A stretch of DNA of 64,000 bases from NCBI GenBank assembly GCA_904063045.1, contig CAJFCJ010000014.1:1237643-1301642 (forward strand), written 5' to 3'. The notes under the pieces are model-generated. The model searched no databases and had not been told where the DNA came from. It saw only the letters and a list, made by a program, of their open reading frames with translations. Of the stretch, positions 33,646-41,400 are shown one piece after another. The stretch's first letter is position 1. Each line of letters starts with the position of its first letter. The stretch is from Dimorphilus gyrociliatus. Lineage: Eukaryota; Animalia; Annelida. Position numbers and translations under genes: made by a program.

Positions 33646-35010
33646 TCAGAGTTGCTTTCTTAACTCTTTAAGGTTCTCTTCGTAGAATACTCCATCTATA
33701 GATTTTGTAGAACAAATATTATGTTTACTGCAAACATTTAGATAAATTAGCTTTTCAAATCTTTTTACAATGAAACGTATTTGCTCTTGTGGAATGTCAG
33801 TGTCCCTTAACCACAATTTTCTCAGTGCGGGATCTTTGCCAAAACTTTCAAATATGGCAGCCCAAACAGGCTCTAAAAATGTGCTACCCGATATATTTAA
33901 TTCCTCTAGACAATGTCTCCATCTATCGAATATATCTGTTACTTGGCTAATGAGATCAATTTGAGCAGGAAATATAAAAGTAAATAAATAACTAATATTA
34001 AGAGATCGTAGTTTTTTGGTTTTTAAATAAAGTAGAAATTCAAAATTATCCATATGCTTTAGGTTACAGACATTAATAATTTCGAGATTTTTACAATTTT
34101 CGACCAGACCTAATATTCTTTGAGGTGTTTGGTGTAAATGTAAAGCAGTTTTTGAACACAAGTATATCTCTCTTAAATCTAGACAATCTCCTGGGATAAC
34201 GACGCCTAATTCGGCGTCTGGATAATACGCTTGAAATCTCGTACAACTTATGTTGAACACTTTAAGAGATTGGCAGTTTTGACGAAATTCTGCATAATCT
34301 AATTCGGGGTCTGAGAATCCGTTAACATATAAGCAGTTCTCCATTTCAAATACTTCCATTTTTCGGCACTTGGAATTGATCGTCTCGAAAAAGGCTTCTG
34401 CTGCTGTTGCATGCATTTTATTATTCGATATGTTCAATCTTTTAAGCCTCGGCATTAAATCGAAGCAGAAATTCAAGGCTGCCTTGGGAATGATAGATTT
34501 CCGAAAAGTTCCATTTAAATTAATCGATTCTAATGATTCCAAACTACGAGCGTCCGCTAACTCTGTGAGTAAGCCAGACGTTACTCTAGATGCTGCTTGG
34601 AAAGATAATTCTCTTACGTTGTTGAATTTAGGCACCATATCAACAAACTGTCTATTAGTAAGACAATTATTGAACCGTATCGTTTCACAATCAATAAGCA
34701 GAGGGAAGAGATTTCTCGTCATTCTACCCAATTGCTGATTTGTACATTGTTCCGATCCTTTAACGAAGTCAACATTTTTCCAAAATTTCTTCAATCCAAT
34801 AACCTTAGCCCATAAATACGAAACAGATCCAAGTTTCTTCAATACAATATGGCCTTCGTTCCATATACAAAATTGAAAGATTTTCTCAACAATTTCCAAA
34901 GGTAAGAAATTCCAGTCTGGTAAAGAAGGATCTCTTTTCGCTGATTTCTTTCTAAACGTTTGACTATAACATCTTCGTATACTTTTCCGTTTTCTCGTCT
35001 CTCTATACAT
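33646..35010 (-). CDS. F-box/LRR protein, FBXL6-like paralog 4 (intronless, 454 aa)
   Basis: F-box WNFLPLEIVEKIFQFC...FWKNVDF with the shared EGH motif; LRRs LKRLNISNN, LKVFNISCT, LEELNISGS. Confidence 0.85.
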   Translation of the reverse strand: MYRETRKRKSIRRCYSQTFRKKSAKRDPSLPDWNFLPLEIVEKIFQFCIWNEGHIVLKKLGSVSYLWAKVIGLKKFWKNVDFVKGSEQCTNQQLGRMTRNLFPLLIDCETIRFNNCLTNRQFVDMVPKFNNVRELSFQAASRVTSGLLTELADARSLESLESINLNGTFRKSIIPKAALNFCFDLMPRLKRLNISNNKMHATAAEAFFETINSKCRKMEVFEMENCLYVNGFSDPELDYAEFRQNCQSLKVFNISCTRFQAYYPDAELGVVIPGDCLDLREIYLCSKTALHLHQTPQRILGLVENCKNLEIINVCNLKHMDNFEFLLYLKTKKLRSLNISYLFTFIFPAQIDLISQVTDIFDRWRHCLEELNISGSTFLEPVWAAIFESFGKDPALRKLWLRDTDIPQEQIRFIVKRFEKLIYLNVCSKHNICSTKSIDGVFYEENLKELRKQL

Positions 35011-36605: not shown

Positions 36606-38748
36606 ATGTTGAGGAGTGTTTGCCAAAGTATATATAAGGAGAAGAAAATTTCTCTCTTCACTTCATATGGCCCACTACTGTTCTTAACGTAAACAGTTAA
36701 GCGTGGAATGGAGCCATTGATGAATAACTACAAGACTTGGAAGATCACGATCGTTGGTTGCGGCAGCACCGGCTGTAAGATCGCGGGTACGTAGAAAAAG
36801 AATATTTGGTTCTTGAAAATTTCTAAATATTACACGTTTTTATTGTTTTGTTAATATCCGTCTCCCTAAACAGGCTACTTCATTAACAATGGATGGGATG
36901 TTAAACTATTCGACCGTTCTCCAACTGTTATTCGTAACGTGTGGAAGATGGTTCAATCCGATATAGAGTATAAGTTTGCTCGCAACCGTTTTGCTGGTAC
37001 CTGTACAGTAAGGAGAATAGATTATTTCTTTTCGAATCCTTAAATATGCCTATTCTATGTCTATTCTGTCGTTATTTTAGGGCGGTTTAATTTGCGCTAA
37101 TGACATTGCTGACGCAGTCAGGCATGCTGATTTAGTTATTGAGGCCATTGAAGATGAACTTCTATCTAAGCAAAATCTATTTGAAAGTTTGTCTTATTTT
37201 TTATTATTACTCAATACTAAAAATGTTTGTCTTCTCTATTAAGTCTTAGGTCGTCATTGTAAGCCAAATGCCATTTTGGCGACTACAACGCACCAATATG
37301 ATATTTCTCAAATTGCTGAAAATACGCGTAATAAAGATGTAAGTAACTATTAATTGGTTAGAATTTCGATAGTAAAACTTATAATATTTTATTTATCCAA
37401 TAGCGTGTTATGGGTATACAATTTATGTGTCCTATTTACGATAATCCTGAAGTAATGGTCACTCCTGCTAGAGAGACTTCGGAGGAGAAGATAAATATTA
37501 GTATGTACATTTTTGTCTTTATTTTCTCGAATTCTAATTAAATACTTGTTGTTTTCTGTTTATTCTTTTTAACAGTTAGCAACTTCCTCTCAAATTTGGG
37601 AAAGCGAGTAGAAGTAAATCATTGGTCTATTTTTTCGGGTAGAACTGTTGAAAATGAAGATCCTGATGTTTTGTGGTCACATAGTAAGTGTTTAACATAT
37701 TAGTCTACACTTAATAATTATCTGTATATTAACGATTTTATTACTATTTTTAGTTAATAGAGTTTTATCTCTTCAAATGAGATCACCAAATTCGGGAAGT
37801 TTACCTGGAATTCCTTTTCCATTACCGAATTTGAATCCAATTCCGAATACGAATATGAATACGAATACGAATATGAATATGAATATGAATACGAATATGA
37901 ATACGAATACGAATATAAACACTAATCCAACTACTAGTTCTATTCCAAGAACCTTATCGAGTCAGACCCCGAATCTTGGTGTGAATGCGAATTTGGGCAT
38001 GAATACGAATCAAAATCGAAGTCGTATTCTCAATTCCAACGAAGAATTATCTTCACTATTGACTCGGGTGTTTGGCTCTTCAGAAGCGCTTCCAACGTTA
38101 CCACCATTTCCTCAGCTAGGTGCTCCTGGAACGCTTCCACCGTTACCACCATTGTCACTACTACCTGAGCTAGCTAGACTGACTAACAGGGCTCCAACGA
38201 CGGCTCCAACGGCGGCTCCAACGACGGCTCCAAAGGCATCCCGGCCCGTTCCTCACATGGATTGGACTTGCGAGGGTGAGTTGAACTTTTTTGCGTCGTT
38301 TGTCTAGACAAGTCAACCAAGTCTTTTTTTTGTGATTAAAAGTTGTTAAACTCGTACATTTAAGTACTCGTTACATAAATGTCAAAGTTAATCACGCTTT
38401 ACTTAAGAGGTCATTGGGTACTGTTTTTACTGAAATTTTTTCTGTAATTTTGGCATTGACGACTAGTTTGACCTTGTCAAATAAATTTAAAGAAAAATTT
38501 ATAGTTTGTTAAGTATTTAAAATATATTCTTCCATAACTTTCCAGATGAAGATAAAGACGACGAGGCGGTTGGCAAGCCACCTCAAGAATGTAGTATATG
38601 TTTGGAAAAGCCAAGAAATTGTTTGTTCAATCCTTGTCATCATATTGTGTCATGCACAAAATGCGCTGGTATACTCTTGAGGAACGGGGCCGGGTGCCCT
38701 TTATGCCGTCAAGTAGTCTCGAATGCTGTTAAGGTTTACTTTGGTTAG
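36606..38748 (+). CDS. 3-hydroxyacyl-CoA dehydrogenase NAD-binding-like domain fused to a C3HC4 RING finger (9 exons)
   Basis: In-phase exons start near 36606 (or ATG 36708), 36697, 36874, 37081, 37241, 37404, 37576, 37754 and 38546. Rossmann motif ITIVGCGSTGCKIA, ADLVIEAIEDELLSKQNLF, LGKRV...INR, a low-complexity linker, and CSICLEKPRNCLFNPCHHIVSCTKC...CPLCRQ ending in TAG at 38748. Confidence 0.85.
37846..37920 (+). repeat. Coding hexamer repeat (AATACG/AATATG)n encoding an Asn-Thr/Asn-Met dipeptide run
   Basis: About 12 tandem 6-bp units in the linker exon of the dehydrogenase-RING gene. A 12-bp GCTCCAACG(A/G)CG repeat (APTT) follows at 38191-38238. Confidence 0.85.
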
Positions 38749-40146
38749 ACAATTTTGTGAAGTTTCTAGTAACGTCTATCTGTTTTTTTTTTTTGGAAAG
38801 TTTAGAAATATCTAATATTCCTTTTTATTATCTCATGAATATTTATAAGAAAAAAAGAAGGATTTTATTTTCTTTTTTGTTAGGTATGAAAAAAATATTC
38901 AGATAAATAATTCAATTCTTTCTATTTTTGGTTATTGACCCAATTTAAAAAAAAAAAATGTATAGTTTTGTTAATTGGATTTAATAGAGTGTATTAAGAA
39001 AAGAAGAAATGAAAAAAAAAATCTATAACTACGTGTAGTTAAGCAAATTATATATTATGTTCTATTGTAATATATAGTTGTTTATGTTTTTGATTCGTTT
39101 TCGTTTGGAAAATGTAAAAGAAACAAAAAAGAGAATGTGTTATGAATTTTTGTATGTTCTATTATGTATTTTTGTTTATCTTTTTCATGTCCTATAAGTT
39201 TGAAAGTTGTTGAAGAGATGTTATATTGAATAAACTTGAGAAAGGTAACTTTATCTAAAATTGCCTTTCTCTTCTTGACAACTATATACAGTTTATATTA
39301 TTATTAATTTATTATTTACAATAACCTTTTCTTTTATTAAGATTATTTGAAGTTATCTAATAAATAACTCTGCTCATTCCAACTAAAGTTATTTTAAATA
39401 AAAGAATGGATTTTAAATCTATACAGTTGAATAATCTAAGTGCTGTATAAGTAATAAGCCGATAAAAGAAGTATATTCCTTATAATATCCTAATTTAGTT
39501 GAAGCTATTGAATTATTGAAGAAAAAGTAAAGGAATTTTTTATGTGTATAGATTTCTTTGTAACATATAATCATTTCTCTTTCTCTCTCTCTAAAAAAGC
39601 ACTGTACAAGCTTGAACTAAATAGATTGACGTTATAGATGTTATAAACAATTTTTAACTGTTTAAGATGACCTTTTGAAATATAAAAAAGTCACTTTTCT
39701 TGTCTATGTTTTGTCCTAGTTACCACAATAAAAAATAAAACAAATGTCAGACAAATCGCCTTTTATTATGAGTTATTTACTCAGTTAATTCGAAAGTAAC
39801 ATTTTTATTAGCCTATAATGATTTTTTCTTTCTGTTATTGATTGTTTTCGTGATTTTCCTATATTCTCCTAATTAAACTCAAGTACATTATTGCTTTCTT
39901 ACTTGAAATTTTTATGCCATGCATACTTATTTCACTTAAAAAACAATGTTTATAATTTAAACAACACTGTCTCCATCTGTTGTTTTTTAATTTATTACAA
40001 GGGAAAAATGACACAAACCGGTCTATCAAAATAATGTACGATGAAACCGTATTGTGTTTATGAATATTAACTGGTAGATAACTTTTTTCCACTTTGAAAT
40101 AATACCAATTTTTTCACCTCTTTAGTCATTCGCCTATTCTAGAAAC

Positions 40147-41400
40147 ATGTGTGAGAATTTCGACATGTTCGACATGAAAGATATTAGTTACGAAGTTTAT
40201 AAGGTTGGTTCAAATATTATGGAAGTTGACCTAGAAGAACTGAGGTTGAAGGTATTCGAAGCCAACCATCCTGTAATAGAAATACCATTAATTTTTCAAA
40301 ATTTTCCTGCTATAGATAAACCTCTAAATCCTTTTCTAAACGTTCACGATCACATTATGATTAAAACATGTTTAGAACCAATTTTCCTCAATATATTATC
40401 CAATTCGAAATTTAGAGAAAAGAGATTTTACAATACACTTAAAGAACTGTACGAAAATGATAATTCACTTAATAAATATGTTACAAGGAGGAAATTAGGA
40501 AGATTTTGTACAGCTCAAGAATATTTCATAAAATATAGAATACTTATGGCAAAAAAATACTTTGAGGAATCATTTTTCGGTTGCGGAAATTCTAAAAATG
40601 TATTTTTAGAATACTTAACGGAAGAAATAAAGAATGATAAGAATTGGGATAAAGTTGAAGAGATACTAATTCCAATTGTTAATCCATATACAACTTTGAC
40701 AAAATCCGTCAGATTAAATGGTATTAACGCTAAACAATATTTCGCTATTCAATACCGAATAATGCATATTATCACAAGACTTATTGAAGATTCTAATCAA
40801 CCATTAGAAGATATTATAAATATAGGATTTTTTGATATTAAGTATAAAGTTTGTTTCAATACAACTGAAATAGTTACATCTATTATCGGTCAATCTGAAA
40901 TAAATCCATTGGCAACCTATAATACTGTATATTTAGGTTCATATAACGAAATTTCAAAGGCATTTCAAACTACAGGATATCATAATAATTACGAAACTAA
41001 CTTGATAATGGAAATGATTATTTTCAGTGCAACTGGAATTCCCATCGATCCTGAAGATATTTTAATATCAAGTTATCCTTGCAAATATACAGAAACATTA
41101 AATGAAATATCTTTTATAGTTTTGTTTGAACAAATCTCGATATGGCTTACAAATTCTGACTTAAGTAATGACTTACGTTTGCCTATAGCTCATGCAAAAT
41201 GTATTCTTCTATTGGAAACTGGTTATCTACAACTAGAAGAAGTCTTTAAAAAGAATTCACTCTACGGTATTTTCTCTAAAGGTGACATCAGAAATAGGAA
41301 TGATAGTATTAAACGTACAATAAAGAGGATAGAAGAGGTTTTCTCTAATAAAATGGGTCATATTACCGACGAAGCAGTACTTGAAAGAGTTTACGGATAA
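40147..41400 (+). CDS. Orphan family member A (417 aa, intronless)
   Basis: Long ORF in AT-rich DNA. Shares GINAKQYFAIQYRI, IFSATG, PIAHAK and the terminal TDEAVLERVYG with the neighbouring ORFs. Confidence 0.8.
   Translation: MCENFDMFDMKDISYEVYKVGSNIMEVDLEELRLKVFEANHPVIEIPLIFQNFPAIDKPLNPFLNVHDHIMIKTCLEPIFLNILSNSKFREKRFYNTLKELYENDNSLNKYVTRRKLGRFCTAQEYFIKYRILMAKKYFEESFFGCGNSKNVFLEYLTEEIKNDKNWDKVEEILIPIVNPYTTLTKSVRLNGINAKQYFAIQYRIMHIITRLIEDSNQPLEDIINIGFFDIKYKVCFNTTEIVTSIIGQSEINPLATYNTVYLGSYNEISKAFQTTGYHNNYETNLIMEMIIFSATGIPIDPEDILISSYPCKYTETLNEISFIVLFEQISIWLTNSDLSNDLRLPIAHAKCILLLETGYLQLEEVFKKNSLYGIFSKGDIRNRNDSIKRTIKRIEEVFSNKMGHITDEAVLERVYG

Follow-up and report, generated by a model that had tools for sequence, protein, structure and literature searches.

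A predicted RING ubiquitin ligase with a degenerate 3-hydroxyacyl-CoA dehydrogenase domain in the annelid Dimorphilus gyrociliatus

Can a gene that joins a dehydrogenase-type NAD-binding domain to a ubiquitin-ligase RING exist as one expressed unit, and, if so, is its dehydrogenase part an enzyme, a sensor or simply a folded adaptor? This question is raised by DgyrCDS9941, a gene in a 64,000-nucleotide stretch of Dimorphilus gyrociliatus DNA (contig CAJFCJ010000014.1), referred to here as the window, whose coordinates we use unless the contig is named. A first-pass annotation made from the letters of the window alone had proposed a pseudo-dehydrogenase–RING fusion acting as an NAD(H)- or acyl-CoA-sensing E3 ubiquitin ligase. 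We find one gene encoding a predicted catalytically dead, truncated dehydrogenase domain followed by what reads as a complete RING, as supported by RNA joints, Pfam matches, profile alignment and a fold model. A regulatory nucleotide-binding role is plausible, and acyl-CoA sensing is unlikely.

One spliced transcript encodes both domains

The gene lies on the plus strand. Enumeration of the possible GT..AG combinations, with RNA contigs settling the choice, yielded eight exons with a coding sequence (CDS) at 36708–38748 and a product of 447 residues. The spliced translation agrees letter for letter with DgyrCDS9941 (CAD5121426.1; UniProt A0A7I8VYK3), a D. gyrociliatus entry without a descriptive name that is located at 1,274,350–1,276,390 of the contig and belongs to a published genome (PMC7854359). 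Using exon 2 alone as a phmmer query against 1.84 billion representative proteins returned this protein as the sole match. The region, animal DNA with 31% GC, is AT-rich, and its list of long open reading frames (ORFs) reveals the linker exon alone, as the first-pass annotation had already noted.

All seven introns are of the GT..AG type and each is present as a joint in RNA contigs of two origins. A 1133-nt contig from a coral-tank metatranscriptome, 95–99% identical to the genome and representing a related strain, runs from 36682 through exons 1–7 (36682–38229) and contains introns 1–6 as joints. Contigs from an RNA run of D. gyrociliatus itself contain introns 2–7 as joints, including 38275|38546, where the linker exon meets the RING exon, the junction that the first-pass annotation had proposed to check by RNA-seq or RT-PCR. 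The last intron is conspicuously long, with 270 nt compared to 57–87 nt for the first six, a feature that might be taken as a sign that the RING exon forms a gene apart from the Rossmann exons. We consider this extremely improbable, as it is refuted by the joint itself: a 666-nt contig spans 38275|38546, with 96 nt of exon 7 before the joint and the RING exon plus 3′ untranslated region (UTR) up to 39114 after it, and mid-intron 7 has a contig depth of 0. Moreover, no further gene lies between 35010 and 40147, and the gene is publicly annotated with this one product. The zero depth in mid-intron 7 also means that no RING-less retained-intron form was seen in the RNA contigs.

The model departs from the first-pass annotation at the 5′ end. 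The ATG at 36606, previously taken as the start of the gene, opens a short upstream ORF (uORF) whose stop codon (TAA, 36690–36692) stands 18 nt ahead of, and in frame with, the true start codon at 36708. Furthermore, the start of exon 4 is corrected to 37244. DgyrCDS9941 is thus a single expressed gene coding for a dehydrogenase domain and a RING.

A truncated dehydrogenase domain, a disordered linker and a RING

The whole protein matched the Pfam family 3HCDH_N (PF02737) over residues 12–182 with an E value of 3.8e-31 and 108.8 bits (cut-off 22), spanning profile positions 1–174 of 180; on single exons the 3HCDH_N matches were marginal. The helical C-terminal dehydrogenase domain (PF00725) gave no Pfam match in the whole protein, and a hidden Markov model (HMM) built from 33 retrieved homologues aligned to residues 9–181 and then ended, placing the end of detectable HADH homology at residue 181 in exon 6. 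The absence of the dimerisation domain described in the first-pass annotation is thereby borne out. A mitochondrial presequence is absent as well, strand β1 beginning at residue 12. The AlphaFold2 model of residues 1–215 reached a mean predicted local distance difference test score (pLDDT) of 87 and a predicted template modelling score of 0.82, with confidence extending to about residue 185. Compared with Hbd and HADH entries of the PDB, Foldseek gave a template modelling score of 0.75, a root-mean-square deviation (rmsd) of 1.7–2.4 Å and 24–28% identity, and VIA-align against the NAD-binding domains of these enzymes gave Z scores of 25–27. Residues ~7–192 are therefore modelled as a well-folded HADH-type NAD-binding domain. 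A possible retention of Asn208 as INRVL (residues 207–211), reminiscent of VNRLL, was considered and rejected, as it lacks statistical support and lies beyond the end of the profile alignment at residue 181; matching the terminal helix to helices of the C-domain gave an inconsistent alignment, leaving the retention unsupported.

Individual residues were assigned from a phmmer alignment with human HADH (1f12) in the literature numbering (Ser137, His158, Glu170). Two MAFFT alignments (A1 and A3) agreed with it, as did the HMM of the 33 homologues for the His158 and Glu170 positions. On the cofactor side, Gly22, Gly24 and Gly27 of human HADH are kept as Gly17, Gly19 and Gly22 within GCGSTG (residues 17–22) and Ala31 as Ala26, together forming the fingerprint G17-x-G19-x-x-G22-x-x-x-A26 (GxGxxGxxxA; coded at 36756–36785). 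The NAD-type acidic residue Asp45 is kept as Asp40 in LFDRS, and Glu106 and Lys115 as Glu92 and Lys101 of the EAIEDE..K stretch (residues 92–101), where Glu110 is conservatively changed to Asp96. The cofactor contacts read from the letters in the first-pass annotation were thus correctly placed, as were the altered catalytic positions: Ser137 is replaced by His123, NTSS reading TTHQ (within TTHQY), His158 by Gln144 in GIQFMCP, and Glu170 by Met156 in PEVMV. Asn135 (Thr121), Asn161 (Cys147), Met26 (Thr21; 36768–36770) and Gly29 (Lys24) are replaced as well. Of the 44 columns that 80% or more of the 33 homologues have in common, 27 are kept and 17 are lost, the latter including all catalytic positions.

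In HADH, His158 is the proton acceptor and is anchored by Glu170, with the catalytic site at the interface to the dimerisation domain (PMC10988713, which also describes the roles of Met26 and Asn208). The equivalent of Ser137 is essential, and the C-domain dimerises HADH-type enzymes (PMC6333283). Because the catalytic His is a Gln, its anchoring Glu a Met and the essential Ser a His, and because the nicotinamide-stacking Met is a Thr and the entire C-terminal domain contributing active site and dimer is gone, the domain is predicted to be a pseudo-dehydrogenase unable to act as a 3-hydroxyacyl-CoA dehydrogenase. It shares the 3HCDH_N-type NAD-binding domain with the HADH/Hbd enzymes, and lacks their His158/Glu170 pair, the Ser of NTSS and PF00725 with its Asn208; an intact dinucleotide fingerprint combined with lost catalysis is the pattern of NAD(H)-sensing pseudo-dehydrogenases. 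That the protein is still an oxidoreductase with a rearranged active site, for example with His123 as the base, acting on a substrate other than acyl-CoA, seems very unlikely to us: a His does occupy the Ser137 position while the canonical His is lost, and the cofactor fingerprint is retained, but the C-terminal domain is absent and the equivalents of Glu170, Asn161 and Met26 have gone as well.

The carboxy-terminal part matched Pfam zf-C3HC4_3 (PF13920) at residues 394–439, with E values of 3.9e-12 for the whole protein and 1.5e-13 for exon 8 alone, and scores of 46–51 bits against a cut-off of 27. The Pfam search of the spliced protein, along the lines of the check advised in the first-pass annotation, thus detected both domains. 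The eight zinc ligands follow C3HC4 spacing (C396, C399, C411, H413, C417, C420, C431 and C434), and the RING exon aligned over its entire length to the RINGs of MDM4, MDM2, cIAP1/2, XIAP and MUL1 (E ~1e-7). Arg435 directly follows the last Cys, and the terminal VKVYFG lies opposite IKVFIA, VRTF and IPLY. With all ligands, a Pfam score above the gathering threshold, the Arg and the aromatic tail in place, the protein has the attributes of the zf-C3HC4_3 RING E3 ligases, and its terminus reads as a complete RING of the MDM2/IAP/MUL1 class. In RINGs of this class the tail aromatic residue supports RING dimerisation and activation of the E2~ubiquitin conjugate.

The two domains are connected by a low-complexity linker of ~190 residues rich in Asn, Pro, Thr and Leu, in agreement with the order of low-complexity linker and complete RING that had been read from the letters. 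In the full-length AlphaFold2 model the pLDDT is below 50 over residues 217–414, predicting disorder. The linker contains two coding microsatellites, (CGAATA)x12 at 37844–37915, encoding an NTNMN run, and (GGCTCCAACGAC)x3.7 at 38190–38233, encoding APTT/APTA repeats. Relative to the genome, the coral-tank strain carries an in-frame 18-nt insertion inside (CGAATA)12, an in-frame 6-nt deletion and 16 mismatches in the linker, the latter making ten codons non-synonymous, compared with 3 mismatches in ~643 nt of exons 1–6. Within this comparison to one related strain, whose contig ends before the RING exon, the reading frame is preserved, and constraint is far stronger on the N-domain than on the linker. 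The disorder, rapid evolution and length polymorphism of the linker speak against a tight allosteric coupling in D. gyrociliatus.

Distribution and predicted function

The combination of the two domains appears to recur outside annelids. The top feature match of the whole protein in the ESM Atlas (185 of 256 features; a language-model feature score of 0.89, rated by the tool as a lead only and given without an alignment) is a cluster of 152 proteins, all of which contain PF02737 and PF13920. Mollusca is the commonest phylum, with 137 of those known. The representative has 266 residues, leaving no room for PF00725, so that the cluster resembles DgyrCDS9941 in both Pfam domains and in the missing C-terminal dehydrogenase domain, and differs in having no long low-complexity linker. 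The 3HCDH_N–RING fusion is not unique to DgyrCDS9941, and we consider a common origin of the cluster and DgyrCDS9941 probable. We found no paper on the 3HCDH_N–RING architecture or on the DgyrCDS9941 protein; the architecture is present in public databases, unannotated, and the gene is uncharacterised.

The intact ADP side of the domain (GxGxxGxxxA, Asp40, Glu92 and Lys101) together with a rebuilt nicotinamide and substrate side points to NAD(H) or another ADP-containing nucleotide, rather than acyl-CoA, as the likeliest ligand, and binding of such a ligand is plausible. Acyl-CoA sensing, put forward in the first-pass annotation, is unlikely, being weakened by the loss of the C-terminal domain, which forms half of the acyl-CoA cleft, and by the remodelled equivalents of Met26, Ser137, His158 and Asn208 on the nicotinamide side. 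We give about an even chance to the reading in which DgyrCDS9941 is a RING E3 ligase carrying the dead dehydrogenase domain as a recognition or regulatory module, most likely for such a nucleotide. The protein would act as an E3 ubiquitin ligase and form pairs by way of its RING and the aromatic tail; this pairing may stand in for the lost dehydrogenase dimer interface. The dead domain would serve as the recognition or regulatory module of the predicted ligase. Given the long floppy linker, the ligand would more probably gate recruitment by the N-domain than switch the RING allosterically.

Several observations weigh against this reading. Met26→Thr21, Gly29→Lys24 and Glu110→Asp96 are deviations on the cofactor side or in the fingerprint region, and through them the predicted ligand binding could be weakened or lost. 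The RING is unfolded in the full-length AlphaFold2 model, whose alignment contained no RING sequences and which says nothing on inter-domain contacts; ligase competence is accordingly a prediction from sequence. No second RING plus 3HCDH_N protein was found in word-indexed searches of 5.8 billion proteins, where the queries were the N-domain, the whole protein and the RING, the last of which gave just 2 candidates. The molluscan cluster is tied to DgyrCDS9941 by its feature score and was not retrieved by the N-domain alone.

The main rival holds that the dead domain binds no small molecule and is a folded interaction or substrate-recognition module onto which a promiscuous RING cassette was shuffled. 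We regard it as possible, with a clearly smaller probability than the nucleotide-binding reading. The rebuilt nicotinamide-side residues, the changes Gly29→Lys24 and Met26→Thr21 in the fingerprint region and the beads-on-a-string layout given by the long disordered linker all speak for it, as does the fact that zf-C3HC4_3 RINGs are joined to many unrelated invertebrate domains. However, what is conserved of the remainder are the classical dinucleotide determinants G17, G19, G22, A26, D40, E92 and K101, a pattern not readily accounted for by a need for the fold alone.

Likewise, the gene could be a lineage-specific chimera with little or no selected function, a transcribed by-product of evolution, as might be suggested by the lack of a close orthologue in the searched sets of 5.8 billion and 1.84 billion proteins and by the microsatellite-derived, fast-evolving linker. 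This is improbable in our view, as the 447-codon frame is intact over eight exons with clean splicing and high contig depth, the indels of the second strain keep the frame, exons 1–6 are nearly invariant, and the same domain pair is present in the 152 mostly molluscan proteins.

The individual parts of DgyrCDS9941 can be compared to known systems. Human HADH and Clostridium Hbd share its NAD-binding fold (Z 25–27, rmsd 1.6–2.3 Å, 24–28% identity) and, within it, the GxGxxG fingerprint, the Asp that closes β2 and the ADLVIEA..K motif. Unlike them, DgyrCDS9941 has Ser137, His158, Glu170, Asn161 and Met26 replaced, lacks the helical dimerisation and substrate domain at the C-terminus as well as a mitochondrial presequence, and carries a RING. 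With MDM2/MDM4, cIAP1/2, XIAP and MUL1 it shares the C3HC4 spacing, the Arg after the last Cys, the short aromatic tail and the position of the RING at the extreme C-terminus; its N-terminal partner, in contrast, is a dead dehydrogenase instead of BIR, p53-binding or transmembrane regions. The best match to these proteins scored ~35 bits, making DgyrCDS9941 an orthologue of none.

Its pattern of retained dinucleotide determinants is likewise seen in CtBP, NmrA/HSCARG and Rex, where catalysis of the Rossmann domain is weak or lost and the use is regulatory. These proteins derive from other dehydrogenase families (D-2-hydroxyacid and SDR-like) and act on transcription, and none of them is known to carry a covalently attached ubiquitin ligase. 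RING E3 ligases with a domain binding ADP-containing metabolites also exist: the WWE domain of RNF146 binds iso-ADP-ribose and the DTC domain of Deltex binds NAD+/ADP-ribose. Their binding folds are different ones, and the ligand domain abuts the RING, as opposed to the ~190-residue disordered linker of DgyrCDS9941. The predicted protein would thus combine two known kinds of protein, the ligand-domain RING E3 ligases and the dehydrogenase-derived sensors.

Few E3 ligases read small-molecule state directly, RNF146, the Deltex ligases and FBXL5 being mechanistically informative examples, and dehydrogenase-derived NAD(H) sensors such as CtBP connect metabolism with gene control. A wider proposal, a spiralian (annelid and mollusc) family of RING E3 ligases whose degenerate HADH NAD-binding domain senses NAD(H) or ADP-ribose-like nucleotides, is speculative and in our estimate rather unlikely. 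If true, such a family would couple ubiquitination directly to redox or nucleotide state, and would be the first known case in which a metabolite sensor of dehydrogenase origin is joined covalently to a ubiquitin ligase. Provided that it is conserved across annelids and molluscs, the fusion would offer a simple, testable link from redox or nucleotide state to protein turnover. As C-terminal RING cassettes are shuffled onto many invertebrate domains, the fusion alone is no proof of sensing.

Feature map, sequence relatives and flanking transcription

The coordinates of the exons and the adjoining transcribed features, all on the plus strand, are collected in Table 1.

Table 1 Features of DgyrCDS9941 in window coordinates.
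Feature	Position	Strand	Content	Basis
uORF	36606–36692	+	28 codons and stop; possible minor long 5′ UTR; outside the CDS	
Exon 1	36708–36786	+	Start codon, strand β1, dinucleotide fingerprint	Translation, RNA joints, alignments
Exon 2	36874–37007	+	End of strand β2, Asp40 (36912–36914)	RNA joints, alignment
Exon 3	37081–37186	+	ADLVIEAIEDELLSK; Glu92, Asp96, Lys101	Pfam 3HCDH_N positions 70–98 on the exon alone
Exon 4	37244–37338	+	AILATTTHQY; His123 (37291–37293), Thr121	Acceptor 37244 fixed by RNA joints
Exon 5	37404–37500	+	GIQFMCPIYDNPEVMV; Gln144 (37419–37421), Cys147, Met156 (37455–37457)	Alignments
Exon 6	37576–37683	+	NAD-binding domain: closing helix and strand, LGKRVEV	
Exon 7	37754–38275	+	N/P/T/L-rich disordered linker, residues 207–381	
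Exon 8	38546–38748	+	Acidic stretch, C3HC4 RING (C396–C434, 38590–38706), Arg435, tail VKVYFG, stop 38746–38748	
3′ UTR	38749–39114	+	Up to contig end	D. gyrociliatus RNA contig, contiguous over 38545–39114 after the 38275|38546 joint

The word-indexed searches returned canonical bacterial and animal HADH/Hbd proteins alone, at 25–35% identity, with bacterial Hbd-type proteins as the best. For the N-domain (residues 1–215), bacterial Hbd-type proteins scored highest (E 1e-19 to 1e-21; at most 35% identity), and animal HADH proteins ranked below them (nematode 29%, human ~28%), a ranking drawn from sampling that is biased by the word index. A metagenome scan with the DgyrCDS9941 protein retrieved two bacterial HADH-like loci alone, at 28% identity. 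Shape searches of the AlphaFold DB clusters and the ESM Atlas with the N-domain model gave canonical HADH clusters alone among the matches listed.

Upstream of the gene, an unspliced D. gyrociliatus RNA contig covers 36000–36737 at a depth of ~178, compared to ~4000 in the exons; transcription here reaches 1.3 kb or further upstream of the start codon. This low-depth signal may represent a minor long 5′ UTR containing the uORF at 36606, or divergent or background transcription common to the minus-strand neighbour. The latter, at 33646–35010, is an intronless ORF of 454 codons resembling a leucine-rich repeat (LRR) protein, publicly annotated as a gene without a Pfam domain; its matches are weak LRR ones alone (LRR_4, E 4.6e-5, below the Pfam cut-off). 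On the other side, an orphan gene starts at 40147. Finally, the 95–99% identical spliced transcript in the coral metatranscriptome indicates that a Dimorphilus-like worm was present in that coral sample.

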